Source: Andalucia godoyi And28
Taxonomy: Eukaryota > Protista > Jakobida
DNA length: 64,000 nt
NCBI GenBank assembly: GCA_009859145.1
Contig: VRVR01000027.1
Location: forward strand, 48,915-112,914
Direction of reading: 5' to 3'
In this document: piece by piece, positions 24,375 through 47,319 of the stretch
Numbering within the stretch: position 1 is the first letter of the stretch
Layout of the letters: each line of letters begins with the position of its first letter
The notes under the pieces: generated by a model
Seen by the model: only the letters and a program-made list of their open reading frames with translations
What the model was told of the DNA's origin: nothing
Databases searched by the model: none
Program-made: the position numbers and the translations under genes

Positions 24375-26265
24375 AGCATGTCGAAGCAGAGGTTCTTGTC
24401 GTCAGTTCCAGCATGTTCGGACTTCGGAACTCCGACAGACGTCCGACAATACTCCGATCCGCTTTCTCGATTTCTTCGTCCAGTATTTTTCATTTTGTAT
24501 TCAGCATTCGAGGATTGGAATGTCAACGAGGCTGCGCCGACTCCATTGTGTGTGCCATCAGCGAAGCACTGTTAGAAGGTGTGCTGTCCATCGATTGTTC
24601 TTTTACCATGTTGTTATTGACAGTTTGTGTGGAGGCTCAATGTGTGAATGAAGCGATAACATCCTTAACATCCGACGAAGGTTACATTAACGAAGATGAG
24701 AGGCTTTCGAATTATCCCGGGACACCCCATGGCGATTCTTCTCGCTCTGTTAATTCTATCCCCGGAGTCGATTGCACGGATGTCGCAGTTTACTGGACAA
24801 GGCCACAGTTTTCCATGACCGAAGCCGTGCCAATCGAGAGTTGATTATGCAGATCATATCAACAGCCGGCTAGGAGGTTTCCTTTCTGACGGACAGCACT
24901 GAAAAAAGGTTCCGGTTTGAAGGGCGTGGCAACATTGTCCGTCGTTTTTGCATGCCGCTGGCGTCCTGTGCTCATCTTCTAGATGATTTGAAAGCGTCTT
25001 TGTTTAAGGAAGATTCCAGCGCACCTTATCGAAGTTGACTGCATTTTCTTTGCGGATTGAGTCTTGCTGCAGGACATATTACAGAGCAAACAGCGGAATG
25101 GATGGATGTTGTGGTGCAATCCACTTGTGCATCACATTCGGCAGCTCCTGTGGGTCCCCGCACGTTGCTCAGCGTCTTCTCGACAATGGGTGATCCTGCT
25201 TCTTTGGCTTCGAATACTGATGAGTAACGAATTCGAGAAGCATTGATGCGCACGGAGGAAATCAAATCCTGGAGAACTATGTTTTTGGGGTTGCTATTAT
25301 TCACCACACCGGTTGTTGTGATTGCTATGAGGCTTGTGTGGGTCCCTTCCATTCATATGAACAGAGATGTGTGGCTAGCATAGTGGTATTCTTCATCTGG
25401 CTAGGATTTACCTTGTGCGGAACCGGGTCTACTGATCCTCTTCACCCTGTCGGTTTCTCTCTTGTTGTTACAATTGCCGTCCTGGTCGTTGTGTGTCCTG
25501 TGTGCGATTGGTGTTGCTACTCCAACAGCTGTCTGAGTTGGATGGGGAGTGGTGGGAGAACTCTCGGCATACTCATCAAAAGCCGAGTCTCTGGAGTCTG
25601 ACGTGTAAGCTCGAATTGTTTGCTTCGATCACACAGGGACTCTTAAGCAAGGAAAATCTCCGTTGAGAGGTATGGATTCTCAATATCAGCGAGCTACCCT
25701 TTTGATGAAGACATGGTCCGAGTGCTTGAGTCCCAATCAGAACATCCCATTGCAGCTGCCATGATTTGCTTCATTGAGCCGAAGAAGTTGCCGTTGGGTC
25801 ATTAGAAGATCCAGAACGGGGTCGAATGCAAGTCCTTTCAGACGTTTCCTGGACAGGGTGTGACCGGGAACTTCTCCACCACCGAAGGAGACATTACTGT
25901 TATTGTTGGAACAGCTCAGTTCTTGACTGCCTTTGGTGTCGAGATTCTATCGGTTTGGCGAATTGACCTACTTGCCATCATCCAAGCTGCTCTAACGGTT
26001 GTTCTTGTCTCTATTCAAGGTTGCGTTTTCGCTCAGTTTGGGCTCATTGATACTGTTCGCCCAGATGCAGCTGCCACACTTGCCGTTCCTTCGTTTCTGG
26101 GGATGCAGGGGTATACATGATATCGGGGATAACATTCCGGCTGCGCAGCATGTCGGAAACATCGTTGGTATTCCCTCTCATCGCGAGAGTGTTGCCGTCA
26201 GGGAGGATTGTTGCAATTCGCTGCCTTCAAGAGGAAGGAGCTTTGCGGCATGTACAATGTATTTC
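24375..26265 (+). pseudogene. Decayed paralog 1 of the P1B Cu-ATPase at 42312-46091
   Basis: Collinear fragments: FSIRGLECQRGCADSI, EALMRTEEIK, LHPVGFSLVVTIAVLVVVCP, IVCFDHTGTL, SQSEHPIAAA, FQTFPGQGVTG, AQFGLIDTVRPDAAAT, GDNIPAAQHVGNIVGIPS. Multiple stops, frameshifts and large deletions. Confidence 0.9.
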
Positions 26266-26504
26266 AAAGCCTATAGCTCTGCTTGGAGCTTTGTTGAAGG
26301 AGAGCACGTGGTCCGATGAAAGAGGGACATCCAACTAGCGCGTCGATTCGATCGGTGAAAGTGGCAGTGAAATCGTTGACTGCGGACGAGATTTTTGGTA
26401 AAACGGCAGCAATGGACATTGAAGAAAAGGTACTTTTGGCTGCGTTGAATAACGCCAATGGCTCTCCTTTTAGAGGAAAAAATCGTGGAATAAGGTGGAA
26501 CGAA

Positions 26505-26906
26505 TCACTGGCACTGCTGCCAACTATAGGATGGTAACGTGCCTACTTTGGACGATTCTTTTGACTGTTGCTGCGGAACATCATCAGCAGTTCTTGTTGA
26601 CACCAGATCAACACATGCAAGAAATGCAGTAATAATCAAGAAGAGTGATGGGATTCGTTCCACTTTCCAATGCAGTGCCGCAGACACCGGCAACTTCCAG
26701 TAATCAATCTGAAAAGCCTCCAAATCGTTATACTTTTTCAGAATCCATGCGTAACGGAGACAAACAATCCAATAGAGGAGATTTTTCTTGTTGAGAACGC
26801 ACGAATTCCGTCGGACAAAGTAGCGTCCTCGGATTGGGTACACGAGCAACTGACACATTCTGAGAAATGAGCAGCGACTAATTGAAAGATGAAGCACGAT
26901 CCTCAT
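26505..26906 (-). CDS. Hypothetical small membrane protein
   Basis: 133-aa ORF with hydrophobic segments; no motif recognised. Confidence 0.3.
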   Translation of the reverse strand: MRIVLHLSISRCSFLRMCQLLVYPIRGRYFVRRNSCVLNKKNLLYWIVCLRYAWILKKYNDLEAFQIDYWKLPVSAALHWKVERIPSLFLIITAFLACVDLVSTRTADDVPQQQSKESSKVGTLPSYSWQQCQ

Positions 26907-28588: not shown

Positions 28589-29050
28589 TTAACACATCCT
28601 TTGACGCGAATACTGCGGCTGTTGACCCATGTTGCACACTGGCTGCTGGGGTGGGCACATCTGATGAGTGCCGCTCTGCACAGATGGCGAGTACACCTGC
28701 GGTGGCTGTTGCATCTGCTGCGTTTGAGGAACCTGGACTGGAGGGAACTGCGTTTGGTGATTCTGCTGGGATTGCAGGTAGTGAGTCATCGCTTGTTGGT
28801 TTGCCTCAATATGCTTACCACGAGCGCGAGCATTGTGCTCTCTCGCCATGTCGTTTGCCTTGCAACAGCAGTCCGCGAGACCGCCGAGACAACAACAATT
28901 GCACGTAATGCGGTCAACGCAGCTCGGATTGTCCAGCTCGGTCAAATAACACTTTTGTATGCCAAACCCACACGTCGGGAGGCAGCACAGGAGGCAGCAG
29001 ATGCGGGCGCGGCATGTTGTCTTGTCAATGTATGGTCGAATGGGTTGCAT
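28589..29050 (-). CDS. Cys-rich protein, PLAC8-like, with Gln/Pro-rich tail
   Basis: ICCLLCCLPTCGFG...SCVDRITCNCCCLGGLADCCCKANDMARE followed by a QP-rich tail. Confidence 0.5.
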   Translation of the reverse strand: MQPIRPYIDKTTCRARICCLLCCLPTCGFGIQKCYLTELDNPSCVDRITCNCCCLGGLADCCCKANDMAREHNARARGKHIEANQQAMTHYLQSQQNHQTQFPPVQVPQTQQMQQPPQVYSPSVQSGTHQMCPPQQPVCNMGQQPQYSRQRMC

Positions 29051-29450: not shown

Positions 29451-30737
29451 ATGCCCTCTCAGTTCTCATTTGATGACAGTTGGCAGAGGTCTTGCAGATG
29501 CTTTGCTGTAGCATTTATTAATCAACAAGCGTGCTTCGAAGCCACGAGGAATCATATTGCAAGTGGTACGTTTGTAGAAATGGTTTGCATGAACGGCAAT
29601 TCTGTGCTTCGTGGTCAGGATCCTCTTCCCATCGAAGAAAATGAAAGCGGTAGAACGAAATCCGGCATTATTGCTTTATGTTTGCCTGACCTCGGTTTCG
29701 AATCTGAATTGCACGTTCCTCAGTTTGTAGGCGCGGAACCGGCTGAAAGGAGAATCCAGCGGGTCTCGCATGGCACGAATGGCGGTAATCTTTGGCGAGG
29801 AACACATGTCGTTTGTTGCAAGGGACGCTGTTTTTCCGGTCCTGATTTGCCGGTCTTGGTGTGTACATTTGTCATGATTCTATTGCTCTCTGTCTTGTGG
29901 ACATACCTTGTGCTGCCTGTGGTTGCTACCGAAACTGGGTCCGTTCTGTGGGCCCTTCCCGCTGTTTTAATCATGAGCTCGTTGTTGTTCCTGTGTTTGA
30001 CTGCATTTTCAGACCTAGGGATCATTCCGAAGAAAGTGAAGCCGGGAACGCATCGTTCCGAGCGTGTTGCTGTTCTCAATGCTGCTTCCGCCGAGAGAGA
30101 ACTTGTCAAAATGCAGTGGTGCACGACTTGCAACATTCACCGCCCTCCGCGAGCGTCTCACTGTAGGCGCTGCGAAGTCTGCATTTTGCGTTTTGACCAT
30201 CACTGTCCCTGGATTGGTACTGATATCGGTGAACGAAATTATCGGTGGTTCCTGCTATTCGTTATTTGTTCTGCTAGTTTGGCTCTGGCTGCTCTTATAA
30301 CTTCAATAATAGCAATCCTAATGAATTCCAGGACGGCAGATGGGCACGCGAATGGTCGCGCAGCCACTTGGGGTGCTATTCTTGTAACCGTGCTTGCAGC
30401 ACTATTGCTTTGCTTCACCGGCCCTTTGGGTTGTTTCCACATATATCTGACTCTGTCTGACCAGACCACTCGAGAATTTCTGCAAAGACATTGCAAAGAA
30501 ACATCGTATACCAGACGATCGCCTTGTCGCAATTGCTTGCATGTGTTCTGGGATCCCACTCAGAGTTTGATAAGGCAACCGAATTGCTTCTTGGTCCGTA
30601 TGACCGGTTGCTTGTTTCGATGCCGCTGCTGCAAGTTTTCTGCAACACGTCTCTCATTTGAGGCCGACGTCGACGAGTCCGTCGCATCGTCCCAAGCAAG
30701 CAGCCTAGCGGGTGCTGCTGAACCAGATTCAGTTTGA
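29451..30737 (+). CDS. DHHC palmitoyltransferase (ERF2/ZDHHC9-like); start may be 29580 or 29589
   Basis: WCTTCNIHRPPRASHCRRCEVCILRFDHHCPWIGTDIGERNYRWF, four TM helices, DQTTRE (TTxE) motif. Confidence 0.95.
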   Translation: MPSQFSFDDSWQRSCRCFAVAFINQQACFEATRNHIASGTFVEMVCMNGNSVLRGQDPLPIEENESGRTKSGIIALCLPDLGFESELHVPQFVGAEPAERRIQRVSHGTNGGNLWRGTHVVCCKGRCFSGPDLPVLVCTFVMILLLSVLWTYLVLPVVATETGSVLWALPAVLIMSSLLFLCLTAFSDLGIIPKKVKPGTHRSERVAVLNAASAERELVKMQWCTTCNIHRPPRASHCRRCEVCILRFDHHCPWIGTDIGERNYRWFLLFVICSASLALAALITSIIAILMNSRTADGHANGRAATWGAILVTVLAALLLCFTGPLGCFHIYLTLSDQTTREFLQRHCKETSYTRRSPCRNCLHVFWDPTQSLIRQPNCFLVRMTGCLFRCRCCKFSATRLSFEADVDESVASSQASSLAGAAEPDSV

Positions 30738-31274: not shown

Positions 31275-31622
31275 TTACATCTTGCGGCATTCTGCTGCAC
31301 AGCGGCGACAGGCAACAGCGCACTCTTTGCAGTGGGATGAAGTGCACTTGTCACAATCGTTGGCGCACTGCTCGCATATGTCTGCGCAAAGGTGACAAAG
31401 ATTCTTATGCTGCACAATTCCTGCCGCCATCCAGCGGACACAGAGATTGCAAATTTCTGCACAAGCGTGGCAGATGCGCACACACCCCATAGCATCACAC
31501 TTCTCCGCACACACCGTGCACGCGATGAAGCATTCCTGACAAGCTTGCATACAAGATTCGAATCCAGCAGAAACTGTCTTCTCAGATTGAGCACACGTTC
31601 CACGAGCCACTGCGGTTTGCAT
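31275..31622 (-). CDS. Four-helix-bundle Cys-rich copper storage protein (Csp/DUF326 family), copy 1
   Basis: SCMQACQECFIACTVCAEKC...CVRICHACAEICNLCVRWM...LCHLCADICEQCANDCDKC...HCKECAVACRRCAAECRKM: repeated CX3C/CX2C, no signal peptide. Confidence 0.88.
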   Translation of the reverse strand: MQTAVARGTCAQSEKTVSAGFESCMQACQECFIACTVCAEKCDAMGCVRICHACAEICNLCVRWMAAGIVQHKNLCHLCADICEQCANDCDKCTSSHCKECAVACRRCAAECRKM

Positions 31623-32151
31623 TGTTCTTATGATTTCGTTAGCAAGCAGAAAATAAATAGCTTTCAAGGAAAACGAGGAGCTGGCGTCTTTATATATTTC
31701 GTTTCATCTTCCAGTTTAGTCCAAGAATGGATGATGTGGTGTTGCAGCCCTCAACTTGAATTAGCGCTGTTATTGTGTAGCATCCTTTGCAGTGCGGTAA
31801 TTGTTACTTGCATGCAAGTTCTTGCTTGAGATGTGCTATTAATAATTACTTTTGGGCCTCACAAACCAGAAGCTGAACACCGAAAATCCACAATGTACGT
31901 ATAGGAAGACGACGATGCTACGGAACGTTGTCAAGAAACAAATGATGGTGCTCAGTGCAAATATTCAAAAAATGTGTGATGAAGGAAAAAGAAAAATGAA
32001 ACCCACAACAGAAGATAAATGACTGAAAATACTTCCTCTTTCATCACTAATATCAAACACACTGTGTATAAGAACAAAGTAGATTTTGAACAGACAATCG
32101 CAGCGAATGAATGGGATCAATGAATGCATCCAAGGCGACACTTGACCATTC

Positions 32152-32490
32152 TCACGCGGAGTGGCGAAGCATGAAAACCAATTCAGCAGAACATCGACGG
32201 CAGGCAATGGCACACTGCTTGCAGCGCCACGAACCGTCCTCTTCACACAAACTTGCACATTGTTCACACACTTGCGCACACAAACGGCACATGTCTTTGT
32301 ATTGAAGCACACCCGATGCAATCCATCGAACGCAAAGAGCACAAAGGTCTGCGCATGCACGACAGGATCGAGCGCAGTTTTCTCTTTCGTTCAACGAATC
32401 TGCAGCGCACGTCACGCACGCTGCAAAGCAGTCTTCGCAGACTTTGAAGCAAAATTCAACGTGAGGAGGAAACTGAAAATGCGTTTTCAT
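32152..32490 (-). CDS. Four-helix-bundle Cys-rich copper storage protein (Csp/DUF326 family), copy 2 (alternative start 32538)
   Basis: CFKVCEDCFAACVTCAAD...CARSCRACADLCALCVRWI...MCRLCAQVCEQCASLC...CKQCAIACRRCSAE; clear paralog of copy 1. Confidence 0.88.
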   Translation of the reverse strand: MKTHFQFPPHVEFCFKVCEDCFAACVTCAADSLNERENCARSCRACADLCALCVRWIASGVLQYKDMCRLCAQVCEQCASLCEEDGSWRCKQCAIACRRCSAELVFMLRHSA

Positions 32491-32599
32491 GGTAGGATGA
32501 TTCTTTGAAGACGATGAAGCGCGGTACTTGTTCTGCATTCTTCGAGAAGAAAGCGACGACCATCCAAGAACATTTGCTGTTTGACAGCAACATTGTTAA

Positions 32600-32618
32600 C
32601 CCCCCCCCCCCCCCCCCC
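32600..32618 (+). repeat. Poly-C tract (19 C) at the 5' junction of the Fanzor/TnpB remnant
   Basis: Directly visible homopolymer. Confidence 0.9.
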
Positions 32619-32619
32619 G

Positions 32620-32965
32620 AGAGCGGTTCAAGTGGAACCTGTGGCAGAACGGTTGACTTTCGAGATCAACTGCCATGAATTCGTCTCCGTTCCCTTCTTT
32701 CGCTGCCCTTTTTGTAGGTTGGAGATCGATCGAGATTCGAATGGTGCGAGGGATATGCACTTGAAGAACACGATGCAAGAATATCGTGTGTTGGGACATG
32801 TCTCCTTGACAATGGGATCCAAAATACCTGTAGCAGCATTGCAATAACACTGATTTGCTGCCGGACGATCACAAAGATCCGGAAGTCGGAGTCGGATCGG
32901 AACTCCGACGATCAATCATCAGAAAAGCGGCTTCGGTCGGTTTCGGTTGTTCCAATCCGCAACCA
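32620..32965 (+). mobile_element. Fanzor/TnpB (IS200/IS605/IS607-type) C-terminal remnant with downstream hairpins (omegaRNA-like)
   Basis: FFRCPFCRLEIDRDSNGARDMHLKN (32695-32769) matches the zinc-ribbon CxxC + RuvC-III DRDxN(A/G)AxNI signature. Stems at 32833-32861, 32861-32882, 32885-32909 and 32945-32964. Confidence 0.68.
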
Positions 32966-33009
32966 TTAACTTTTCCTCTTCTTTTTTGAAGAACGACATC
33001 TCATAAAGA

Positions 33010-33501
33010 ATGCAGATGGACAAGTGTGATTGCGGCTCGATGCCTATGCATTTTGCTTCATCCGAAGAGGTCACAATACTGTTTCAGTCGTGGAAGACGG
33101 AATCCCGAGCAACTTATGTCATGTCTTGGTTCGTCGTTTTTGCTGCGGTTGTGTGCACCGAGCTGATGAAGCAAAAGCTACGAAAGTGGGAAGCTTCCGT
33201 CTCTGACAAGGATCAGCTTGTTCCACTTACCGTTAATAGCCCCCTGTCTCAGCAACCACTGTTGTTGGATGAAAAGCCTGCGGATCAGATCAGACAATTA
33301 GAACCGTGGAAAACGCTGGTCACGAAATCGTTGTTGTCTGCTTTCTACACTCTAATTGCTGCTTTTCATCTGCTGATCATGCTGGTTTGCATGACGTACA
33401 ATGTTGGTTTGTTTTTCTCAGTAATTGCCGGAACGTTGGCAGGCGATCTCTTTTCGCGATTGCAGAGGAGTGCTGCCACTCACCAAGCTGCATGCCATTG
33501 A
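33010..33501 (+). CDS. CTR: CTR/COPT-family copper uptake transporter
   Basis: N-terminal Met motifs (MQM, MPMHF), TILFQSWK, TM2 MLVCMTYN (MxxxM), TM3 GTLAG (GxxxG). Confidence 0.93.
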   Translation: MQMDKCDCGSMPMHFASSEEVTILFQSWKTESRATYVMSWFVVFAAVVCTELMKQKLRKWEASVSDKDQLVPLTVNSPLSQQPLLLDEKPADQIRQLEPWKTLVTKSLLSAFYTLIAAFHLLIMLVCMTYNVGLFFSVIAGTLAGDLFSRLQRSAATHQAACH

Positions 33502-33739
33502 GAGCGGACATTCTCACAGGCGTGAAGATGACAAGCTTCAGGTTACGTGCGATTTCATTGTTGCTCCTCAGTGAGTGCATTCTTCCTTTTTCCATTCCTC
33601 GTGGATTTGTCATGTAGTTTTCGATTGCTGCAGGAGGTTTTCAGCTCGTTTTTAAGAAGGAAGAAGAAGTGTTGCTGCATCAAGAGCATGCAAATAGTAC
33701 AAAAGTGAGAAATTTTCCGAAATCGCGTGTGTAACAGTT

Positions 33740-34070
33740 TTCAAACATTTCAAACAAATTGGAGAAAGCAGAAATTTTGATGAGGCTTGCATGTGTTTCT
33801 TCACCATTCTGAGAAGGAGACACGACACTGTAGGAAAAGTCATCTGTTTTCCAGTCCGCTGTGAACAAATATAGACCATTGGGTCACCCATTAGATATGA
33901 AAGTGATTTCAGCCTGCGTATCGTAAACACAAGAACAGAGAAACTTTTAACCGTGAAAACATTGAAAATACCCACATCTTGTTGCCCAACTTGAGAATTG
34001 GACGGAACAATTGCACGGAAATGAGGAGACGGTGGAGAAGAACCTTCCGCTGAAGTTTGAACGGGCCAGG
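33740..34070 (-). pseudogene. Inverted decayed copy of the 5' part of the 22621-23319 gene
   Basis: ADWKTDDFSYSVVSPSQNGEETHASLIKISAFS vs ADWETDDVFHVFVSPSQNVKAAHVYLIKISAVS; nucleotide similarity extends upstream (caagatgtgggtattt vs caagatatgggtattt). Confidence 0.75.
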
Positions 34071-34822
34071 AGCATGCCAAAAATATCGGCTGAGAAAACG
34101 CCTCGAATCGATCCACTTTTACAGCGACTTATCTTCAACAAACGAAAAGGGAGGATGTAATTAATTCATGTTCTAGCTTTTCAAGTACTTCCGTATGTCT
34201 TTGCAGGAACATCCATTCGCAAATCTAGACAGTTTATGCTATGAAAAAGAGTGTCGAGAGAATTATAAAGCACAGCCAAACGCAAACCAACTTATCTAGA
34301 CCGAAAGTGTTTTGTTGTGAGCACCATCGTTGATGAAGCCATTCGCCATGCAGGGACAGAATTGAAAGAAACAGTCCTCGATGCCACAACAACTCACAAA
34401 ATGTCGTCACGTAGTGAACAAGGGGAAAACAAAATCGACAACATGCAGTTCCAGGGAGGACAGCTCGTTTCGCGAAGTCAAGATACCCAAGCTGCTTCGT
34501 TCTCCGAAACCTCTACCATGGAACGTCAAACAAAGACCAGGAGTGGCAAGTACAGCAAAAAAAAAAGTTTCGCGAGAAAAAAAAATCCAGAAGAGTTCGA
34601 ATCAAACCTGTGAATCGAACTCGTGGAGGATGGTTGCGTCGTGGCGTCGTTGCGTCGGGAAATTTCACGCCACGGATGTCACAATGTCTTTGCTTCCACT
34701 TTATATCTTTTATTAGACAATCTTTCGCAGAGGATAGTCTCACACAAGGAATTTTCCGTGTTTTTCCTCCTTATGAACTTTTTGTCGAACGCACATCACT
34801 TTGAAAAGCAACTGTCCCTCAA

Positions 34823-35089
34823 ATGACTGGATGTGGATTGTGGTGCATCTTCATGATAGCCTTCGGAATTTGTGTGTCTCTCGTTTTGATTTTTGTTGTA
34901 ATCGTAATGTTCAGGAAAGCAGCTGGAACGCGTACTCGGCAAACATTGACGAGGGTGGTTCGCACCCAAAATCCAAATGTGTCTGACGTCCAAAATGATC
35001 ATCCGGTTCCCTCTGCTCCGTTCGAGGTGTATGTCGCCGAACCTATGGCAAGCCATCCTGGTCCCAGCTCGAAAATCCGTGAAGTCTAG
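34823..35089 (+). CDS. Small single-pass membrane protein
   Basis: CGLWCIFMIAFGICVSLVLIFVVIVMF then RK; resembles 55935-56132. Confidence 0.5.
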   Translation: MTGCGLWCIFMIAFGICVSLVLIFVVIVMFRKAAGTRTRQTLTRVVRTQNPNVSDVQNDHPVPSAPFEVYVAEPMASHPGPSSKIREV

Positions 35090-35226
35090 CGTGCAAAGAA
35101 TTCACAATTCCAGTCTGCTAGGCAAGTGAACAATCACGATTCCATAGGAGAGTCTGCGGAATACAGCCAGTAACAATAAACCATTTACCTACCGGATGAA
35201 TATCTCATGAACAGCGTTTGCGGTCA

Positions 35227-36649: not shown

Positions 36650-39218
36650 TGAAGCTCCACCGTTCTTGCTCGTCTACGTTCGCCCGGAATGCGTTTTGGT
36701 TGTTATTGCACCATGTATTGCACGAAATCTCTTCTTATTATAATTCGTGGACGAGCTATCGACAAACCTGCTGCCTTTTCCGCTGGGTGACAACTCCGAC
36801 ACGGTCTGTTTTCAAGCTCACAATGTGAAAATTTAGGACTATCCAAATGAGCGCCGAAATATTTACCTGTTGCCAAATGCAATCGTTCAGCATCTCCATG
36901 CATGATGTGGTCCTTGAGAATGCCCAATCGTTGCGCCAGCATTCTAGCGATACCATTTCTCGACAGCAGTCTCGTACAAAAAGCATTGTCGTTGAGAGGA
37001 TTTGTTCAAGATCCAACCCAGCTGCCTTTCCCATAAATGGAAACGATCACATTACCTGGCCAATCCCGTTAGTCTTCCAGAACGTTGTCTCCGGAAACCA
37101 TAAAAACGTGCAAACCCATGTTTTTCAGAGTAGTGATTGTGCGTGCGCAAACTTCCCCAGTGGTAAAACGGATAGGTTTGCACCGGGTTTCCCGTGAGTG
37201 AGAGCACCTGTCGTATCAAAGCACATGATTCTGGATCAAGAGGCCAGTCCTAGATCTTTGCCACTGTTGATCAAGATGCCCAACGTCGCACCAACGCTGC
37301 AGCCAATAAGAACTGCAGTAGAAACAACCGAAGAGAAGACGGATGGATGGAGAGGTGAAGCAAGCACGGCATCTGACAATGTGACGCCCAGCCAGATAAA
37401 ATACCCAACAATCGCATGCGCGATAATTACTGGAACGAAAATGCCGGATATTCTGCTCGCGAGCCTCTGCGACGGAACCTTCGACGACGGCACATTCTCC
37501 ATGAGCCTCAAGATTTGTGAGAGAGTCGCATCATCACCGAGTCTCGACGCTCTGATGAACAGCATTCCTTCATGCACTACAGTACCACCCATAGCAGATA
37601 GGTTTGTGCGATTTTGAACTGGCATGGATTCTCGCGTTAGCACAGCTTCATCACAAGGAATTTTTCCGGCTATCTTCACTAGCGGAATGTCCCCTTCTTC
37701 AATTAATGAGGCAACAATCCGTTCATTGTCAATTGAGCGATCAATTCCTGTGACAGGAATGGCATTGGAAGGCTTCAAATCTAGAAGTTTGGTCATTGCT
37801 TCAGATGACTTGCTTTTGGCAACATTCTCCAGATATTTTCCCAACAGCATGAATGCGATCAGAGAAGCAGCCGCTTCAAAGAAAAAGTCACCTTGAAAGG
37901 AAGCATCTGCAGCCATGTAGGCCAAGCTGAAAACAGAATATATGTATGCCGCAAAAGTCCCAATAGAAATAAGAACGTCCATTGTGGTTGATCCTCCACG
38001 CAGGGCGATCAGCGCCTGCTTATGAAAAACAGTACCGCTGACAAATTGCACATACGAACTGAGAACAAATTGAACAAATCCCAACGACATCCACAAATAC
38101 CGATTCATGTGAATGGAAGGGACCCACACAAGCCCCATTGCAATGATCACGACCGGAATCGTGAATATCAACGAGGAAAGAAATCGTTTTCTCCACGATC
38201 TTATCTCCCGAGTTCGCAGTACCGATTCACGAATTCTTTCAGTCACCTGATATGCTGAAAAATTCGGAGAATGAGTAGCATTTAGAAGTATTCTTGGACC
38301 GGGCACCGGGGATCCGAGCTCTTTGGTCTCGGATGATGCAACCACGTGACATTTCTTTTCAACAGCACTTTTGTGTGCAGGAACATACTGGCCACAACCA
38401 CTCGAACTCAACGCATCTACTTTGACGACGTGTAACGGATTCGCCATAAAACAGGCCACTTTCACACTGTCAACACGTCGATGGCACGATACGCCTGATA
38501 CTTCGTAGCCGTATACGATAGGAGGTGCATTTTTGGTTTGAGTCTTCTGAATGACACTATCGGAGACAAAGAACGCCTCAAATCTACATTCAGTTATCGC
38601 GCCTGCAATAGTGTCATTGTTGGATAGTAAGAAATCATGAGACACTGTGACTTCGTCCAACAACACCGCCACATCTACTTGCGTAACACCAGGAAGAACC
38701 TTCACATCTCGAGAAATTGCTGCCGCGCAAGACGCACGTCTCATTCTTTTCACAGCAAACGTTAACCCATTCGAACAAGCTGTTGAAACTGCAGGTTGTT
38801 CATCGTGAGTAAAGGGTCTCTTGACAGAAACAACATCCGTTGCAACATTGACCGTGAAATTCAATCCGCTGACATCGATCTTGATGCCAAGTGCAGATAC
38901 CCAGGCAACTACAATCAACAAATTCCAATCGACTTCCTGCAAGAGATAAAGTTTGAGAGCCAGCCATTTTGCATCTTTCGCATCAGGATCAGAGCTCAAA
39001 TTCGGAACAGAAGCATTCACATGCCTTTGGGTCGGGTCGATAGTAACCTCGAGAACTCCGGAAATTCGAGAATCAGCTTGCAGGATGTTTTGCTTATCAC
39101 GCCCAGCCCAACTTGCGTCACCCACAATGATCAAGTGCTCGTCAATCATGTGAAGTAGAATTGCAGAGCAAATGGACAAGAAGCAAAAAACGGTAAAAAG
39201 AGAAGAATCAAGAGTCAT
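36650..39218 (-). pseudogene. Decayed paralog 2 of the P1B Cu-ATPase
   Basis: 660-aa ORF 37236..39218 is collinear with the intact gene (RMRRASC for GMTCASC, TRES for TGES, CPC segment deleted). An in-frame TGA precedes IMCFDTTGALTHGKP (for DKTGTLT), and disrupted remnants continue to DFVQYMVQ near 36700. Confidence 0.9.
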
Positions 39219-41274
39219 TTCAATCGGACGTCGGAATTCCGATCCGTCTTCGGAAAAGTACTCCGATTCGTTTCTTCATCAGCGAGTTCACGGTTTTTAC
39301 GTTCGACTCAGAATCAATTGGCAGTTCGTACAAAAAGGAACTAGCGGAATTTCAGTACTGCGATGCTCCACTGCATTGGTTGTTGTCTCGGACTGTCAAC
39401 TATATTGTTTCGATTCGACAGCAGTATGTTATTGATGAATGTGTTTCCTCGCTGAGAGGTTGAGAACACAAACCGCCGGGGTTGATTGCGAACTCGGTCT
39501 CTAAGGTCAAGGATCCGTGAATTGCGCTTACGCATGAAGGCAGCTGGATTAGACAATGGAGGCTAAACTGTGTCGAGTCTATGACGGTCCGATACCTTGA
39601 AAAATTTCCTCTCCCTCCTCCTTTTCCAGCTCCCTCGATCGACAACTTCACTCTGTTTAATAATGTTCTCGGCCGTTGCGCCGTCAGATATGCCGTGGTT
39701 GCACAACAACCGTGTTGTTGCTTCGACATCTGAGCTGTTGTGAACCTGTGGTATTATCGACTTGCCGTTTCTCTTTTTCAGCTAGCATGGCGAAGCTGCT
39801 TTTCCTGATCTCGCATCAGGACCCGAAATTCCGTGCGGCTTTGCGTCTGGTTCAACTTCTCTGTATATTCTCCTATTCATAGCAATCTTTGCTGCCTAAT
39901 CATGTTGGGTCTATTGTTTGTTCTTTGGAATAACCATGCAATCATACAGCAGTGAGGCTCTGTTTAAAGGGTAGCTGCCTTGGGTGGTTGTTTTTCATTG
40001 GTAGAGTACCATGAAAACAGGTCGAAGGACAAATCATCTGATTCGTGATCTAATTATTGGATCTCATGCTGTCAAAGGCGACGCACGTCAACACGGACCC
40101 AGAGCGCGTTGCGGAGAAAAGAATATCTTCCTGACGAAGGCAGGTGGCAAACGGTACGAAAAGGTGATGCTGAGCATTGGTTTGCGCTGATTGGAGAAAT
40201 CAACGATGACAGGCGAATCTGTATGTTTGAGAGAAAGCACAAAAATACGCCCACCACCGGTGGATCGCTCATTCTCTATGGTAACTCGTTCATTAAAGCT
40301 GCGGGACTTGGGGAGGATTGTACTATCTCGCAGACATTAAAGGTCATAGAGGCTGCTCACTATTGCTCAGAATCTTCTCGGAGACTCGAGAATCGAATTT
40401 CTGCTGTTACTGTCGGTGCATCATGGATCTTTCAGTCAACGTACTCGCAATCTCTCTGGTCATTGTGCTGTCTGGAGATGACGACGGCAACTTTGCACAC
40501 TTCTGTGTTCTCCTTCGTCGTTGCCATGGCGTCTCTCGTTTGTGTTGTGCCTTTTTGCACCGGGAATACCATTTCCTTCTGCAGTGTCAGTCCGCCGTGT
40601 GGAAGGTGCCTCCTGAGTTGTGCTGATCAAAAGTGTGGGATATCCGAAATTCGCTTCTGGTGTGTTCACAAAATGAGAACCGTGGGTGTTGAAATTCCCA
40701 TTCTGTAATTCCTGTTCCTCAGGTTCATTGTTTTCGTCGGAAAACGATGCATTTGAGCATGTCCCTATTCTTGCATCGTTGGAGAGTGCATGTTTGATGC
40801 TGGAAATGATTTGACGAATGTCGCTGAAACGGAACAGCTTGAAAGTTCGTCTAGCTCTCCACATTCTCTAGAGAGCACTGCCAGAAATTGAGATCAAACG
40901 TCGAGACAGGATTGCAGGGCACATCATATGGTTCATCTAATTGGGCCAGGGGCATCGATGAGCTTTCTTCGGTTTTCTGTTATCTTTGTTAGTACTCCCT
41001 TTGGAGCCTAGAGTGCCGCCAGAGTGACTAAATGTTCGATATTTATCAACTAAACGAGCTGACAGTTGAGGAAATTGCATTTGAATGAGCCAATGATTCG
41101 TCTAGTTGAGATACAAGGCATTTCGTTTCCAATCGGAAGCAACAATTGCTGATCTTCGAAAAACGCATCACGAAAAAGCAAGAAAACCGTTGTCATCTTT
41201 CCAAAATTGATTTAACATTGGTTTTGAAATGGTAGAAGAACTGAGCTGGTGGAATGCTACATTCCGTTTACACA

Positions 41275-42096
41275 TCATTCCTGAGACAGATAGTCAAAGT
41301 TCTGCTTCTCGCATCTGTGAAATGAGAACATTGCGTTGTGTGGACAGATCTCAGTAATGATGAACCCACTTTTCCGAATCAGTGTCTCATGATCCCGGAT
41401 AAGGCTGATACCAGCCAACGGGTACAAAATACAAGTGCCCATTACAGAGAGGACGAATAAGACTCGATCCTTCCAGTTTGCCAACTTCTTACGACCATGC
41501 TCTACGAAATACGCCCGTCCACCAGTTCGCAAAACACGACGACACTCTTTGAGTGCTTCTAATGGGTGCCGGATCGAACACATCATGTCCACAGAAATGA
41601 TCGAGTCAAAGGTCTCGTCCGGGAATGGAAGATGTTCTGCGTCGGCCACAAGAAAATTTAATTTCAAGTCTGTTCTGTGAAGGTTCTTCGCCTTGATTTC
41701 AGCCAAATGCAGCATTCTTTCCGAAATATCAGTGAGAGTAACGACGGCACCTGCAGGGTAGAACTGGGTGTTGCTTCCCGTTCCTATCCCGATATCAAGA
41801 ACTTTCCCTTTCACAAGGGGTACATGGGCCTGACGGAGAGGCTGCATGTATGTTTTCTCCCAAGAAGCAAGCAACCCATCATACACGGGAGCCGCAAAAT
41901 CCCAAAACAACCTCGCAATGACAAATTTACCTGTTCCTAATTGTTCAACACGAAAAGAAGCAAATTCCTGTGACTGTGACGTCCCATTTTTTTTTTGAAT
42001 TTTTTGTGAAGCTTTGCATCTCTGTTCTACTTGAACTGGGTTTCGAGGTCTTCTGGGATGCAATTTCGAGAGGGTAGGGCTTGAGAAGAAGTTCAA
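41275..42096 (-). CDS. Class I SAM-dependent methyltransferase (Methyltransf_11; UbiE/METTL7-like); start uncertain
   Basis: VLDIGIGTG, TLTDISERML, VADAEHLPFPDETFDSII, CRRVLRTGG, FVEHG. No in-frame ATG before YMQPL, so an intron or frameshift may affect the 5' end. Confidence 0.87.
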   Translation of the reverse strand: MNFFSSPTLSKLHPRRPRNPVQVEQRCKASQKIQKKNGTSQSQEFASFRVEQLGTGKFVIARLFWDFAAPVYDGLLASWEKTYMQPLRQAHVPLVKGKVLDIGIGTGSNTQFYPAGAVVTLTDISERMLHLAEIKAKNLHRTDLKLNFLVADAEHLPFPDETFDSIISVDMMCSIRHPLEALKECRRVLRTGGRAYFVEHGRKKLANWKDRVLFVLSVMGTCILYPLAGISLIRDHETLIRKSGFIITEICPHNAMFSFHRCEKQNFDYLSQE

Positions 42097-42311
42097 GAAA
42101 TCATTTCACGATCAATCTGCCATGCACCTGGATCTGCAAACGTCATGTTCGGAATACGTTATCGGGATTTGGATCGGAATTCCGCTCAATCTCCGACAGC
42201 GGCGATTCACCAATATTTAAAGTTAAAAAATTGTTCTTCCAGGATCGTCCTCTTTTCCAATCCCTTCTAGAATTTTTTCCCACCTGTTTTATTGTTGGTT
42301 TGTACCCCATT

Positions 42312-45300
42312 ATGACGTACGAACATACATTCGTGGTGAGAGGCGCAACGTGCTCACATCATTGTCCCCAACGCATTTCCAAAGTCATTTCCGCTCTTCC
42401 AGGAGTGCTGTCCGTCGACGTTGATGTATCCACGTGGCAAGTTGTCGTGACGAGTACCCTCGTTGAGACCTTCACTCTCCTTTCTGTGGTGGCGGACGCC
42501 GGATATTCTGCAGGCCTTTCAGCTTCATCTTGTGTGCTGACAGCATACGAGAGCCAGCAACCAGACATTGAGAAGGCTCCATTGTTCGCGGTCCCGTCGA
42601 CGGCATTGCGCTCGGATCTTGGTGAGAATTCCAAAGTGTTGTGGGTGCATTACCAGTCGCAAGCGGATATTCCGACGACAATTCTTGGTGTTGATGGAAG
42701 TCCACTCTGGAAGCTGCGAACTTCGCATTCTCGTTCTTTTGCATTCCGGGCCGCAAATGTTGAAGAAGCCGTCCTGATGTCGCTTCCTGGTGTTCTTGCG
42801 GTGAAGGCTGTGGATTCTGAAACCTGTCTCTTGCAGGCTACAGTATCGGTTGGTTCGATCCTTGTGGCACGGGCGTTCGCGAGAGGCGTCGACCTCGCGG
42901 AAGCTGTGGTGGAAACATCCCCTTCGGATTCTCAGCATGTGCAAGCAGAGAAACCTGTTTCAGTTTCCGAAGTGCAACTCATCGCCACCAGGGACACACC
43001 GTCGCTGGTGTTTACCATCAAGGGTATGAGATGCCAACGCGGATGTGCCGACTACATATCTAGCCTGGTCCGAGAAGCAAAGTTGCACAATGTTTCGTCG
43101 GTAGAGTGTTCGTTTTCGACGGGTCTCTTGACCTTGTCTTTGGCAGAGGAGGGACCTTATGATCCAACTCTTCGCGAGCAGATCGCTTCCATCGTTTCTG
43201 CAGCAGGCTACCAGCTGGAGGCTGAAGATCAACGGAATTCTTCGGTTGAAGCAACGCCTTCGCAGTCTGATCGCGGTTCGAAAAGACAGTCAAGAGGATA
43301 TGAACATGTGGCCTCATCACTCTTCACAAGCGTCGATTCTCAGGTAGATGTGCCCCTTATCGAAGAATTCGCTTCGGTTTTTCAAGTGAAAGGTATGACA
43401 TGTGCGTCTTGTGCAGCAGCAATTTCACGTGCTGTCAATGCGCTTCCTGGCGTTGTCCATGTCGACGTTGCAGTGCTCCTAGATAAGGCGACTGTTTATC
43501 ATGATCCAAATTGTACTGATCGTGACAGAATTGCGCAAGCCATCATGGATGCGGGATACGAAGTGGAGTTCATTACCGACAGTGCACAGGAGAAATCTCG
43601 ATCCTCTGGAAAAGCTCCCATCATTCGTCGATATCGAGTGTCTGGTATGTCATGTCCCCATCACATTGAAGATGTGAAGGCAGCCCTTTTCATGGCAGAT
43701 CCGTCGCATGTTGTCAAAGTTGATGTCCTGGACTCCAAAGACAAGGATGGAGTTGTTGAAGGATGGCAGTTTCGGTCAGAGGAACAACGGGACGTCGTCG
43801 TCCATTCAGTTAGTGCCTCGCGAGAATCCGTTCCTCTAGGCCCACGTGCGCTTCTCAAGATCTTGTCCTCTCTAGAACTTTCTGCTTCTCTTGTGTCCAA
43901 TGTCGAAGACGAACGGATTCGCGAAGCTCTGATGCGTACAGAAGAAATCAAAATGTGGAAATCACGATTTCTCTGGTCTCTTTTGTTCACAATCCCTGTT
44001 GTCGTGATCGCAATGGGTCTTGTTTGGATTCCGGCCATCCACATGAATCGGAATGTGTGGCTTACGTTGGGGTTTGTCCAACTCGCACTCACGTCGTACG
44101 TCCAGTTTGTAAGCGGTGCTGTGTTTCATCGGCATGCCTGGCTGGCGCTGCGTTCCGGGTCCGCAACCATGGATGTTCTCATTTCGATTGGGACTCTTGC
44201 AGCATATTTGTATTCTGTCTTCAGTCTTGCTTATATGGTTGCGGTTCCGTCTTATCTCGGGGATTTCTTTTTCGAAACTGCAGCTGCTCTAATTGCCTTC
44301 ATGTTGTTGGGAAAATATCTCGAAAACGTGGCGAAGGGCAAGTCGTCGGAAGCGATGATCAAGCTTCTTGACTTGAAGCCATCAAAAGCATTTGTTATTT
44401 GTGGACTTGATCGATCGAATGTTGAGGAGATCGACGCGTCGCTGATTGAGGAAGGAGATATTCTTCGAGTGAGAGCGGGGGACAAGATGCCTTGCGACGG
44501 AGAAGTCGAGGATGGGTCTGCGTTGGTGGATGAATCCATGCTGACTGGAGAATCAATGCCAGTGCGGAAGCAAAAAGAAATGCCGATTATCGGAGGGACG
44601 ATTGTGCGAGAAGGAGTGTTGTTTATCAGGGCCGCCAGGCTCGGTGATGATTCCACGCTGTCACAAATGTTGAAGCTCATGGAGAACGCGCAGTCGTCGA
44701 AAGCGCCGTCGCAGCGGCTTGCCGACCGAATTTCCACCGTCTTTGTTCCGTGCATCATTGTTCTTTCCATCTTCGTGTTCTTCATCTGGCTGGGCATTAC
44801 GTTGTCTGGAACCGTGTCGACGGCCCCGCTGCACCCAGCAGTGTTCTCGTTGATTGTCGCGATCGCTGTGCTTGTTGTTGCCTGTCCCTGTGCGCTCGGA
44901 CTCGCGACACCTACTGCTGTTCTGGTTGGCTGTGGCGTGGGAGCCATGTTTGGAATCCTCATCAAGAGCGGCGAGGCGCTTGAATTTGCAGCAAGCTCGC
45001 GCATCGTTTGTTTCGACAAGACCGGGACTCTCACACAAGGGAAGCCTCGAGTAGAGACGCATGAGTTCTACGATTTTGTACAAGGAGACTCCACAGTCAT
45101 TGTAAGGAGCGAGATCTTGGAGCTGGTTCGTATTTTAGAGTCTCAGTCGGAGCATCCCATCGCCGCCGCCATTGTCGCCTTTATTGAGACCATGCAGGCG
45201 CAGACCGGCAAACCTCAAAGTGCATCGGAGTGCAAATCTTTCCAGACGTTTCCTGGGCAAGGAGTGACGGGCGTTTTCGAAATAGGTGAAGCAGAGGTGA

Positions 45301-46091
45301 ATGTGGTTGTGGGAACGGAACAATTCCTGATTTCGTGCGGTGCACGTTTTCCTTCAGCGTGCAGAAAGCAATTGTCTGCGAGCGTACAAGCGGGTTTGTC
45401 GATAGTTCTAGTATCTGTCCGAGGAGAAGTAGTCGCCCAGTTTGGTCTTGGTGACACGGTTCGGACGGATGCTGCTGCCACAGTTGCTGCCCTCGGAACC
45501 ATGGGAATGCGAGTGTACATGGTGTCTGGGGACAATGTTGCTGCAGCTGAGCGTGTCGGCAAGATTGTTGGGATTCCTTCCGAACGAGTGGTTGCTGGTG
45601 TTCTGCCCTCTGGCAAGATTGAGACTATTAGGCGCCTTCAAGCGGAAGGTATTCTGTTGCATGAAAGTGCAGGGCAAAAGAAACAGGGTAGTGCAATTCC
45701 CATCCGCCACAAGGTCATTCATGTTGGAGATGGATTGAACGATGCTCCGGCACTGATGCAGGCGGATGTGGGTGTTGCAGTCGCAGCTGGGACAGATGTT
45801 GCGCTGGAATCTGCTGGTATTGTCCTGATGAAAGACTGCATTTGGGATGTGGTCATTGCTATCCACCTAGCTCGGACAGTCCTCCGAAGAATCTGGATTA
45901 ATTATGGATGGGCTCTTGGGTACAACATTGTCGCCATCCCAATTGCGGCAGGTGTCTTGTATCCTCTTGTGCAGTATATGGTTCCACCGATTGCTGCGGG
46001 CGTGGCAATGGTCTTGTCCTCTCTGTCTGTCTTGTTGTCGTCTCTTCTTCTGAAGCGGTACCAGCCGCCCGGGAGCCGCGTGTTGATATGA
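42312..46091 (+). CDS. ATP7: P1B-1 Cu(I)-transporting ATPase (ATP7/CCC2/CopA-like) with four N-terminal HMA-like domains
   Basis: HMA motifs GATCSHHC, GMRCQRGC, GMTCASC, GMSCPHH; TGES, VVACPCALGLATP, DKTGTLT, SEHP, GDGLNDAPAL, GYN and AMVLSS (YN and MxxSS are P1B-1 signatures). Confidence 0.96.
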   Translation: MTYEHTFVVRGATCSHHCPQRISKVISALPGVLSVDVDVSTWQVVVTSTLVETFTLLSVVADAGYSAGLSASSCVLTAYESQQPDIEKAPLFAVPSTALRSDLGENSKVLWVHYQSQADIPTTILGVDGSPLWKLRTSHSRSFAFRAANVEEAVLMSLPGVLAVKAVDSETCLLQATVSVGSILVARAFARGVDLAEAVVETSPSDSQHVQAEKPVSVSEVQLIATRDTPSLVFTIKGMRCQRGCADYISSLVREAKLHNVSSVECSFSTGLLTLSLAEEGPYDPTLREQIASIVSAAGYQLEAEDQRNSSVEATPSQSDRGSKRQSRGYEHVASSLFTSVDSQVDVPLIEEFASVFQVKGMTCASCAAAISRAVNALPGVVHVDVAVLLDKATVYHDPNCTDRDRIAQAIMDAGYEVEFITDSAQEKSRSSGKAPIIRRYRVSGMSCPHHIEDVKAALFMADPSHVVKVDVLDSKDKDGVVEGWQFRSEEQRDVVVHSVSASRESVPLGPRALLKILSSLELSASLVSNVEDERIREALMRTEEIKMWKSRFLWSLLFTIPVVVIAMGLVWIPAIHMNRNVWLTLGFVQLALTSYVQFVSGAVFHRHAWLALRSGSATMDVLISIGTLAAYLYSVFSLAYMVAVPSYLGDFFFETAAALIAFMLLGKYLENVAKGKSSEAMIKLLDLKPSKAFVICGLDRSNVEEIDASLIEEGDILRVRAGDKMPCDGEVEDGSALVDESMLTGESMPVRKQKEMPIIGGTIVREGVLFIRAARLGDDSTLSQMLKLMENAQSSKAPSQRLADRISTVFVPCIIVLSIFVFFIWLGITLSGTVSTAPLHPAVFSLIVAIAVLVVACPCALGLATPTAVLVGCGVGAMFGILIKSGEALEFAASSRIVCFDKTGTLTQGKPRVETHEFYDFVQGDSTVIVRSEILELVRILESQSEHPIAAAIVAFIETMQAQTGKPQSASECKSFQTFPGQGVTGVFEIGEAEVNVVVGTEQFLISCGARFPSACRKQLSASVQAGLSIVLVSVRGEVVAQFGLGDTVRTDAAATVAALGTMGMRVYMVSGDNVAAAERVGKIVGIPSERVVAGVLPSGKIETIRRLQAEGILLHESAGQKKQGSAIPIRHKVIHVGDGLNDAPALMQADVGVAVAAGTDVALESAGIVLMKDCIWDVVIAIHLARTVLRRIWINYGWALGYNIVAIPIAAGVLYPLVQYMVPPIAAGVAMVLSSLSVLLSSLLLKRYQPPGSRVLI

Positions 46092-46473
46092 CCATGTCGA
46101 ACTAGCGTGAACGTTGATTTTATCGTGCAGTCCAGTGTTTAGGGTTAGTTATTTTGGGGAGTCGGACTGGAAAGGTGTAAACGGCAAGAAAAGAAGAGTT
46201 CGTCAATGCAGTTCCGGCGACCCGAACTTTTGCCGAGATTTTTAACAAGAAATGATTCACATTGATTGGTATGGTCCATCGTTGGCAAGGCGGAAAATGG
46301 TGGAAGAATGTCCTTGAGAATCGCCCAAAGAGATGGAACCGCCGTCTCGTACAATTCGATGCAGGGCAGCGGGAATCGACAATGATGACAATTCGGGAAC
46401 GCTTGAGTTGTATTCATGATGAATTTACCGCCAATACCATTCTGGTCCTTCGGCACCACTAGAAGAATCACAG

Positions 46474-47319
46474 CTACCACTGTTGCGACGGCATAAAAGA
46501 CATCATTACATACACAAAACGATACGATGGATCTCGAATGAAAACAGCCCGCGACAGAACCGACTGGACAGAGCCGTTGGCGAAACGGATTTGCAGTCGA
46601 AAGGCGCGTTTCGAAGTCGGGCATATTCCACCCCACATACTGCAGCAGTCGCCTTCGACAATGATGTCTCTCAGAGAACGGGAACTTTCAACACCATCGC
46701 TGGAAAATCCACTCCAAACTTGGAATTCGCGATTTGAAGCGACAATTTCCAACTCCTCATGAAATTGAATAACAACGGCGGGAGTGGGAAAATCGAAGAA
46801 ACAAATGGACCGAAGTTTATCCAAGAGCGGTGCTGTATTATGGAGGTCGGAAAGAGGGACAAAAAAGTCAGCGGGTGTGATTGTTGTAGAACAATTCAAC
46901 TTTGCAACAAACGAGGCATTGGCGCCCGTACAAGCACCCTGACAGCGGCAAATAGAATCCGGAATCGTAGGTGGTAGAGCGGCACAGCATACGCCGTGAA
47001 TGCTCGATGACATCACAGGAAACGCTGCGCCTTCGAAAACCGCAGAGGTGGCATTGGATTCAGAAGAAGCGGGATACGGCGATCCTGGAATAGAAAACAA
47101 TGGAGTGGACACAAATGAAAACGAAGGCACCGACAATTCAACGTCTTCGATAGTCTGGATTCGAGAGGGCGCACCCGACAAGAAAATGGACTCAGGGTAC
47201 TCGCAACGATGATTTCGAGAAACACACCGTTCGCACGGATTCAGGTCAACGTGAATGCAACGCTTCTTATGCTTTTGGCACTCGAAACAGGATTTCAACC
47301 GACTCCGAGTAGACGACAT
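46474..47319 (-). CDS. Zn(II)2Cys6 binuclear-cluster transcription factor with possible C-terminal PAS-like domain
   Basis: SCFECQKHKKRCIHVDLNPCERCVSRNHRCEY; the C-terminal IVASNREFQVWSGFS...SLRDII...FRLQIRFANG looks PAS-like. Confidence 0.8.
   Translation of the reverse strand: MSSTRSRLKSCFECQKHKKRCIHVDLNPCERCVSRNHRCEYPESIFLSGAPSRIQTIEDVELSVPSFSFVSTPLFSIPGSPYPASSESNATSAVFEGAAFPVMSSSIHGVCCAALPPTIPDSICRCQGACTGANASFVAKLNCSTTITPADFFVPLSDLHNTAPLLDKLRSICFFDFPTPAVVIQFHEELEIVASNREFQVWSGFSSDGVESSRSLRDIIVEGDCCSMWGGICPTSKRAFRLQIRFANGSVQSVLSRAVFIRDPSYRFVYVMMSFMPSQQW

Follow-up and report, generated by a model that had tools for sequence, protein, structure and literature searches.

The window analysed here, a stretch of 64,000 nucleotides from contig VRVR01000027.1 of Andalucia godoyi And28, contains a copper-handling neighbourhood that, on balance, is probably co-regulated through a neighbouring Zn2Cys6-type protein and a palindromic promoter element. 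All positions are window coordinates, and the reported span is 24375-47319. Genes for a CTR-family importer, two copper-storage (Csp) proteins, a copper-transporting ATPase and a Zn2Cys6-like protein all lie inside 31275-47319, as identified from the open reading frame (ORF) list, Pfam and phmmer searches of the PDB:

31275-31622, minus strand: Csp1, 115 residues with 23 cysteines, Csp3-type (PDB phmmer, AlphaFold, Foldseek)
32152-32538, minus strand: Csp2, 128 residues with 19 cysteines, a tandem paralogue with 43% identity to Csp1
33010-33501, plus strand: CTR-family copper transporter, 163 residues (Pfam Ctr, motifs; present among EukProt-sourced proteins)
42312-46091, plus strand: intact P1B-1 Cu(I)-ATPase, 1259 residues (Pfam, TIGR01511, motifs; present among EukProt-sourced proteins)
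46474-47319, minus strand: Zn2Cys6-like protein, 281 residues, convergent with the ATPase (Pfam Zn_clus, cysteine spacing)

A first, sequence-only reading of this DNA had named a CTR importer at 33010, a P1B-1 Cu-ATPase at 42312, two Csp/DUF326 cysteine-rich proteins divergent from CTR and a Zn2Cys6 factor just downstream of the ATPase, and had proposed that eukaryotic transporters are here combined with storage proteins of bacterial type. The gene identities hold up: the importer by its Pfam Ctr match and signature motifs, the pump by a full set of signature motifs and a TIGR01511 score above cut-off, the storage proteins by a Bacillus Csp3 match, a four-helix model and their cysteine register, and the factor by canonical six-cysteine spacing with a Zn_clus score slightly under threshold. 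The physical linkage of the CTR and P1B-1 genes with the Csp genes is likewise seen.

The pump carries Pfam HMA (two stretches), E1-E2 and Hydrolase domains and scores 510.6 bits against the NCBIfam copper-translocating ATPase model TIGR01511 (cut-off 397). Its core motifs are TGE (745), DKTGT (902) and GDGLND (1139), and its metal-site signature is CPC (858), YN (1204) and MVLSS (1233). GMTCASC at 361 is the sole canonical GMxCxxC among the N-terminal HMA-like domains; the other HMA-like repeats (42312-43400) show CxxxC (GMRCQRGC, GATCSHHC) or a single cysteine. Decayed copies of the same gene lie upstream of it:

24494-26184, plus strand: relic A (tblastn, 41-70% identity)
37185-39218, minus strand: relic B (tblastn 37185-38759, residues 357-912 of the pump, 57% identity; ORF 37236-39218)
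40127-40564, plus strand: fragment C (tblastn, E 1.7e-17, residues 711-863, 37% identity)

Two decayed paralogues had been listed in the first reading; decayed ATPase copies are indeed present, in three pieces rather than two (tblastn). Relic A matches intact-pump residues 232-1092 in three reading frames, with residues ~585-816 missing. Relic B keeps a 660-codon frame open, with an averaged ratio of non-synonymous to synonymous divergence (dN/dS) of ~0.13 against the intact gene; synonymous sites are saturated among the ATPase copies (dS ~2.3). Relic B cannot be a pump, because its first CxxC cysteine is lost, TGE has become TRE, a 17-residue deletion takes out CPC and the ORF ends before DKTGT; a separate deletion removes 11 residues. 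Either its loss of activity is recent, or relic B persists as a truncated HMA-plus-membrane protein in another role. Repeated pump duplication followed by decay would fit past selection for higher dosage.

The promoter element was found by comparing promoter regions for words in common and for CGG...CCG palindromes. Its consensus is the 12-bp palindrome TCGGAAYTCCGA, whose CGG-N4-CCG core is of the kind usual for Zn2Cys6 sites. The divergent promoter of Csp2 and CTR carries GGATCGGAACTCCG, and that of the ATPase and a methyltransferase gene carries GGATCGGAATTCCG; a 14-base stretch, GGATCGGAAYTCCG, is common to the CTR and ATPase promoters within otherwise unalignable sequence. Motif discovery in these two intergenic regions, which the sequence-only reading had put forward as a check, thus returns the same palindrome in both and finds it enriched in the window. 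CGGAAYTCCG has nine strand-matches at six sites in the window against 0.33 expected, a count equalled by none of 100 dinucleotide-preserving shuffles; the palindrome is ~27-fold enriched over shuffles, and all six occurrences of CGGANNTCCG in the window have an identical centre. The sites are as follows, with strand where one is assigned:

21831-21842: TCGGAATTCCGA, an exact match outside the reported span
24424-24435: TCGGAACTCCGA, 69 nt before the ATPase homology of relic A begins
32897-32908: TCGGAACTCCGA, in the divergent promoter between Csp2 and CTR (471 bp), with 102 nt to the CTR ATG
39231-39242: TCGGAATTCCGA, 13 nt upstream of the relic B ATG
42174-42185: TCGGAATTCCGc, in the divergent promoter between the methyltransferase and the ATPase, with 127 nt to the ATPase ATG
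59103-59114, minus strand: TCGGAACTCCGA, upstream of an ABCG transporter gene, with 95 nt to its first in-frame ATG (59008)

When the six upstream regions are aligned, the palindrome is the only invariant block. It has been retained while its surroundings diverged, despite the saturated dS of the ATPase copies.

Two of the sites call for separate remarks. The one at 21831-21842 lies in a 1.5-kb stretch between a flippase gene and the next ORFs, where the surrounding ORFs are unconvincing, and it may mark an unrecognised small or spliced gene. The ABCG gene with its palindrome is 12 kb outside the reported span and may belong to the same regulon. Arrays of half-sites were also considered: TCCGA/TCGGA counts per 150 bp are barely above those of shuffles (maximum 5 in the window and in shuffles), and we make no claim for them.

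The closest relative of the pump in 5.8 billion proteins (69% identity over residues 600-1259) is encoded on a 9-kb Joint Genome Institute (JGI) metagenome contig, Ga0456364_0007775, here called L001. Directly downstream of it is a 316-residue ORF that can be aligned over its whole length with the complete Zn2Cys6-like protein of the window (38% identity) and is its orthologue; pump and regulator genes stand in tandem on L001 and are convergent in the window. The interval between pump and regulator on L001 holds the exact 12-mer TCGGAGTTCCGA, 130 nt before the regulator ATG. It is the only CGGANNTCCG in the 9 kb, for which our own arithmetic gives ~0.002 expected matches. The motif having been defined on the window, the L001 site is an independent replicate. 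As a separate observation on the pump's N-terminal repeats, the CQ(R/K)GC form is retained in relic A (24494-24727) and in the L001 orthologue (L001 23-700).

The candidate regulator scores 19.0 bits against Pfam Zn_clus (PF00172), just below the 21.0 cut-off (E 0.0016). Its six cysteines fit CX2CX6CX5-12CX2CX6-8C (CFECQKHKKRCIHVDLNPCERCVSRNHRC), and all six are kept in the L001 orthologue, with which a CxCQGxC motif and the C-terminal domain are also conserved. A profile of both orthologues searched against the PDB matched only Zn2Cys6 proteins, weakly (Put3, E 0.39; Pho7, E 9). Scanning metagenomes with the regulator alignment gave 474 pattern stretches, none of them confirmed, and did not recover L001 either. 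A PAS-like C-terminal domain was considered and dropped; the AlphaFold model, built on a two-sequence alignment, has a predicted local distance difference test (pLDDT) score of 36 and is unusable. The earlier idea of a local regulator is plausible to the extent that adjacency to the ATPase recurs in a relative and that the palindrome is common to the CTR and ATPase promoters; the further step, binding of the motif by this protein, is one that we infer.

The storage proteins are recognised better by PDB sequence search and by fold than by the family profile, since Pfam DUF326 (PF03860) matches weakly (22.4 bits for Csp1 and 17.5 for Csp2; cut-off 20.4). Csp1, whose start is ATG 31622 and not TTG 31667, matches Bacillus subtilis Csp3 (BsCsp3; 5fig) with E 1.6e-14 over residues 32-130 of the 130-residue ORF, and its further PDB matches are other Csp3 and Csp1 structures (phmmer). 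Csp1 was the one modelled: the AlphaFold model (pLDDT 86.9) has helices at 22-41, 45-67, 72-91 and 96-114, and its top 43 Foldseek matches in the PDB are all members of the Csp family (TM score 0.79-0.90; root-mean-square deviation (rmsd) 1.0-1.6 Å to BsCsp3). In the alignment, Csp1 has cysteine at 17 of the 18 BsCsp3 cysteine positions. Cysteine spacing alternates between 3 and 4 along each helix in both window proteins; Csp2 has lost the last cysteine, and its C terminus is unlike that of Csp1. Inspected by eye, the N termini (Csp1, MQTAVARGTCAQSEK...; Csp2, MQNKYRASSSSKNH...) hold no hydrophobic stretch or twin-arginine motif, and both proteins are best described as Csp3-like, with no visible export signal and a putative cytosolic location; the lack of a Tat or other signal peptide is what sets Csp3 apart from the exported Csp1/2 types. 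Csp3 proteins as a family form tetramers with ~18-20 Cu(I) bound by each monomer.

The segment running from α3 through the loop to α4 reads CGKHDHDHC in BsCsp3, CDKCTSSHC in Csp1 (one histidine) and CEEDGSWRC in Csp2 (no histidine), such that neither window protein has the His-containing motif of 'classical' Csp3s. A subgroup with a reduced His motif (RkCsp3) has been linked to faster Cu(I) exchange (PMC10155185), and the loop sequences of Csp1 and Csp2 are consistent with membership of that non-classical subgroup.

A tree joins Csp1 to Csp2 as its sister (support 0.99); the branch that bears the pair is long and isolated, and no donor group is placed beside them with support. Their GC content, overall and at third codon positions (GC3), equals that of the neighbouring genes. 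Matching composition and sister paralogy therefore indicate an old resident gene duplicated in place, not contamination. When 1.84 billion cluster representatives were searched exhaustively with HMMER, 822 Csp matches emerged, none above 51% identity; among them was neither a close eukaryotic clade nor a self-match. The named relatives are all bacterial (Armatimonadaceae, Noviherbaspirillum, Flavobacterium), and the contigs of two near matches proved bacterial in one case (L003, with a MerR neighbour) and uninformative in the other (L004). The two genes may have been acquired from bacteria by transfer. Two of the proteins matched in the Csp search (P0135 and P0136; 263-273 residues) combine an N-terminal MerR-type helix-turn-helix, recognised by eye, with a C-terminal Csp domain, which suggests a Csp bundle serving as the metal-sensing module of a regulator.

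An exact look-up in a collection of 15 billion proteins found the CTR and the ATPase (EukProt) and neither Csp ORF. With the adjacent genes present, the two Csp genes evidently went unannotated in the source proteome; gene prediction seems to have skipped small cysteine-rich genes. The Csp2/CTR intergenic region also contains the only long homopolymer of the window, a stretch of 19 consecutive C (G when read on the minus strand) at 32600-32618, 62 nt upstream of the Csp2 ATG. In the literature found, the Csp family is presented as bacterial, and the task of storing copper in eukaryotes is given to metallothioneins (PMC5171941, PMC10155185); literature searches for a eukaryotic Csp/DUF326 protein or a comparable cluster found no report. 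What is new is the eukaryotic host and context, family membership itself being known by sequence and predicted fold.

The importer matches Pfam Ctr (PF04145) over 150 of the 151 model positions (E 2e-22; 80.7 bits, cut-off 25.3). It has the MxxxM of the second transmembrane helix (MLVCM, 124-128), the GxxxG of the third (GTLAG, 141-145), a Met/Cys/His N terminus (MQMDKCDCGSMPMH) and a Cys-His end (...AACH). A metagenome scan with CTR matched 143 pattern stretches, none confirmed as relatives; a word-indexed protein search returned the query alone, and exact look-ups of the window CTR and ATPase on contigs found no match.

Taken together, these data suggest two modules ~9 kb apart. In the first, CTR would import copper and the divergent tandem Csp3-type bundles, in the cytosol, would soak up Cu(I) on their 19-23 core cysteines; in the second, the P1B-1 ATPase would pump Cu(I) out of the cytosol, flanked by the relics of three or more earlier duplications of the pump gene and by the Zn2Cys6-type protein. 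The modules would be tied together by TCGGAAYTCCGA, which stands ~100-130 nt before the start codons of both CTR and the ATPase. As a dimer, the neighbouring Zn2Cys6 protein would bind the two inverted CGG half-sites and adjust transcription of the cluster genes by copper status, with its conserved CxCQGxC stretch as a candidate Cu(I) sensor. This proposal combines what is observed (gene identities, the Csp fold, the enrichment, placement and persistence of the motif, and the ATPase-regulator-motif arrangement in one relative) with steps that stay conditional: that the regulator recognises the motif, that the signal it follows is copper, that the genes respond in a given direction, that the Csp proteins load Cu(I) in vivo and that they were transferred from bacteria.

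A fuller version, which we advance tentatively and hold at somewhat less than an even chance, is a copper regulon built within one protist lineage, in which a cysteine-rich Zn2Cys6 copper sensor acting on TCGGAAYTCCGA coordinates CTR, the Cu(I)-ATPase and horizontally acquired Csp3 proteins, the latter serving as a cytosolic store in place of metallothioneins or alongside them. If true, the Csp family would here be put to use in a eukaryote for the first time, and copper-responsive transcription factors would gain a new class; we know of no copper-sensing member of the Zn2Cys6 family and, in this lineage, of no copper regulator.

Several points weigh against co-regulation by copper. A single element before both an importer and an exporter/storage set would be unusual logic: importer levels normally go up when copper is deficient, exporter levels when it is in excess. 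Further sites stand at the ABCG gene, at an unrelated membrane ORF and at 21831-21842, where no gene is evident, and the regulon may not be copper-specific; in the promoter comparison there is no palindrome upstream of Csp1 or of the window's own regulator gene. The GGAATTCC core could suit other kinds of DNA-binding protein, and the proposed regulator has a Zn_clus score below the Pfam cut-off, an unusable model (pLDDT 36) and weak PDB matches. Synteny comes from one 9-kb contig, on which the regulator gene is differently oriented, and three distant pump relatives (45-50% identity, on contigs of 7-10 kb) are without the regulator, Csp, CTR or motif. The linkage in relatives anticipated by the sequence-only reading is therefore kept in its ATPase-regulator-motif part on L001 and absent from the three distant contigs; the arrangement may be confined to a narrow lineage.

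The genes around and between the two modules are these:

17356-21066, plus strand: P4 phospholipid flippase, flanking the region
23526-24278, minus strand: multi-pass membrane ORF, 250 residues (ORF list)
28589-29050, minus strand: Cys- and Gln-rich ORF, family unconfirmed
29451-30737, plus strand: DHHC palmitoyltransferase (Pfam)
35227-36471, minus strand: major facilitator superfamily (MFS) transporter (Pfam MFS_1, E 6e-31)
41275-42096, minus strand: class I S-adenosylmethionine (SAM) methyltransferase, UbiE/COQ5-like (Pfam Methyltransf_11, E 5e-23; NCBIfam)
56603-59164, minus strand: ABCG transporter with a Cys-rich N-terminal region (ABCG domains; first in-frame ATG at 59008)
60411-63941, minus strand: 1176-residue protein with ten Ephrin-receptor-like repeats and an NCD3G-like domain, flanking the region

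The MFS transporter and the methyltransferase head-to-head with the ATPase are both as first described. For the former, the best NCBIfam matches are organic-anion subfamilies, far under their cut-offs; a copper-specific identity (CcoA- or Mfc1-like) was rejected, the only match being to generic MFS_1. The methyltransferase is tied to the cluster only by the divergent promoter that it shares with the ATPase. The Cys- and Gln-rich ORF had been called PLAC8-like. This identity (PF04749) was rejected, as there is no Pfam match at E <= 10 and the likeness to CCxxCCxxxC seen by eye is loose. Membership of the copper cluster is not supported for this ORF, the MFS transporter or the DHHC protein. The 250-residue membrane ORF, again with no Pfam match at E <= 10, is divergent from relic A and shares the 24424-24435 palindrome with it, mirroring the methyltransferase/ATPase arrangement. 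Many further long ORFs (for example, 48851-51811 and 51687-54167) are without a family match.

Strand order alternates along the locus: Csp genes minus, CTR plus, MFS minus, methyltransferase minus, ATPase plus, regulator minus. The sole same-strand tandem pair is Csp2 then Csp1, 529 bp apart, both divergent from CTR. The description 'operon-like' given earlier is not supported: with genes alternating between strands, each with a separate promoter region, the cluster is not an operon.

The alternative that survives best, a serious one although we consider it the less likely, is a broader stress, detoxification or transporter regulon of which the copper genes are only some targets; the Zn2Cys6-like protein might then not be the factor, nor copper the signal. 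It would account for the palindrome 95 nt upstream of the ABCG transporter and for the sites in the methyltransferase promoter, beside the unclassified membrane ORF and at the position with no recognisable gene. There is also a precedent, established in fungi: yeast Pdr1/Pdr3 act on ABCG pumps, Zn2Cys6 factors working there through inverted or everted CGG half-sites. Such a regulon explains less well that four of the six sites stand at copper genes or their relics, that the motif recurs at the ATPase-regulator locus of a relative and that the regulator bears a conserved cysteine-rich stretch.

The arrangement could also be a historical accident, in which the Csp-Csp-CTR trio and the duplicated ATPase array came to lie 9 kb apart with unrelated genes between them and no joint regulation. 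The lack of a copper link for the MFS gene in between, and for the DHHC and 'PLAC8-like' ORFs on the flank, would be in keeping with this, as would the lack of linkage in the more distant ATPase relatives; the searches yielded no CTR or Csp relatives in which linkage could be compared. Chance sits poorly with the 14-base stretch common to two promoters that otherwise cannot be aligned, with the strong motif enrichment and with the immediate divergent pairing of CTR and Csp, for which, assuming ~15,000 genes, we estimate (rather than compute from the genome) a probability of ~1e-4 for each CTR gene. We regard it as improbable. That the Csp ORFs are not working eukaryotic genes at all (unexpressed remnants of bacterial DNA or an assembly artefact) is very improbable indeed: their absence from the 15-billion-protein collection that holds the adjacent CTR and ATPase, the missing self-match in the exhaustive HMMER search, the bacterial nearest named relatives and the 19-base homopolymer run adjoining Csp2 are outweighed by two paralogues at 43% identity that both retain open frames and the full cysteine register, by composition matching the neighbouring genes, by flanking DHHC and CTR genes of eukaryotic type in gap-free sequence with no Ns, and by the lack of any library relative above 51% identity, which speaks against recent contamination.

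Working eukaryotic Csp3 genes wired to CTR would extend the Csp family across domains and would be a clean example of a metal-handling gene that came from bacteria by transfer and was built into a pathway of its eukaryotic host. The palindrome and the syntenic Zn2Cys6-like gene make a specific hypothesis: one protein, one 12-bp site, few targets. More generally, the absence of the Csp genes from the predicted proteome suggests that small cysteine-rich genes may be under-counted in eukaryotic genomes.

Comparison with known systems shows which parts of the locus are familiar. With bacterial Csp3 proteins (BsCsp3; Methylosinus trichosporium MtCsp3; PF03860/DUF326) the window pair share the four-helix bundle, the cysteine register (17 of 18), 42-45% identity and, by inspection, the lack of a visible export signal; unlike them, they occur in a eukaryote beside CTR, with five extra cysteines in Csp1 and the His motif reduced or absent. 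The pump has all P1B-1 motifs of the HMA5/ATP7/Ccc2 Cu(I)-ATPases, its best named matches being of plant HMA5 type (42-44% identity), but differs in having one canonical GMxCxxC, the others being CxxxC, and three decayed copies nearby. The regulator resembles Zn2Cys6 proteins such as Gal4, Put3, Ppr1 and Pdr1/Pdr3 in its CX2CX6CX7-8CX2CX6-8C spacing, in the two-CGG palindrome and in the site upstream of an ABCG gene, whereas it falls under the Pfam cut-off and has no recognisable fungal middle-homology region.

Known copper regulators are of other kinds: Mac1/Cuf1 and Ace1/Cup2 of fungi are copper-fist factors, and Chlamydomonas CRR1 and plant SPL7 are SBP-domain factors. In these regulons, as proposed for the window, a cysteine-rich sensor-regulator acts on CTR or on storage/export genes through a short promoter element. 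Their targets, in contrast, are scattered, their elements are TTTGC(T/G)C(A/G) and GTAC, and uptake and detoxification are not placed under one element. The closest analogue known to us is the yeast ARR (ACR) arsenic cluster, which comprises the bZIP regulator ARR1/Yap8, the reductase ARR2 and the exporter ARR3. The window differs from it in the metal, in the Zn2Cys6-like type of the regulator, in including an importer and storage proteins, in the repeated duplication of the pump and in a regulation that we infer; what ARR1-ARR2-ARR3 would share with it is the plan of a small eukaryotic metal or metalloid cluster, in which a transporter stands beside a dedicated transcription factor and promoter elements are held in common with the neighbouring genes.

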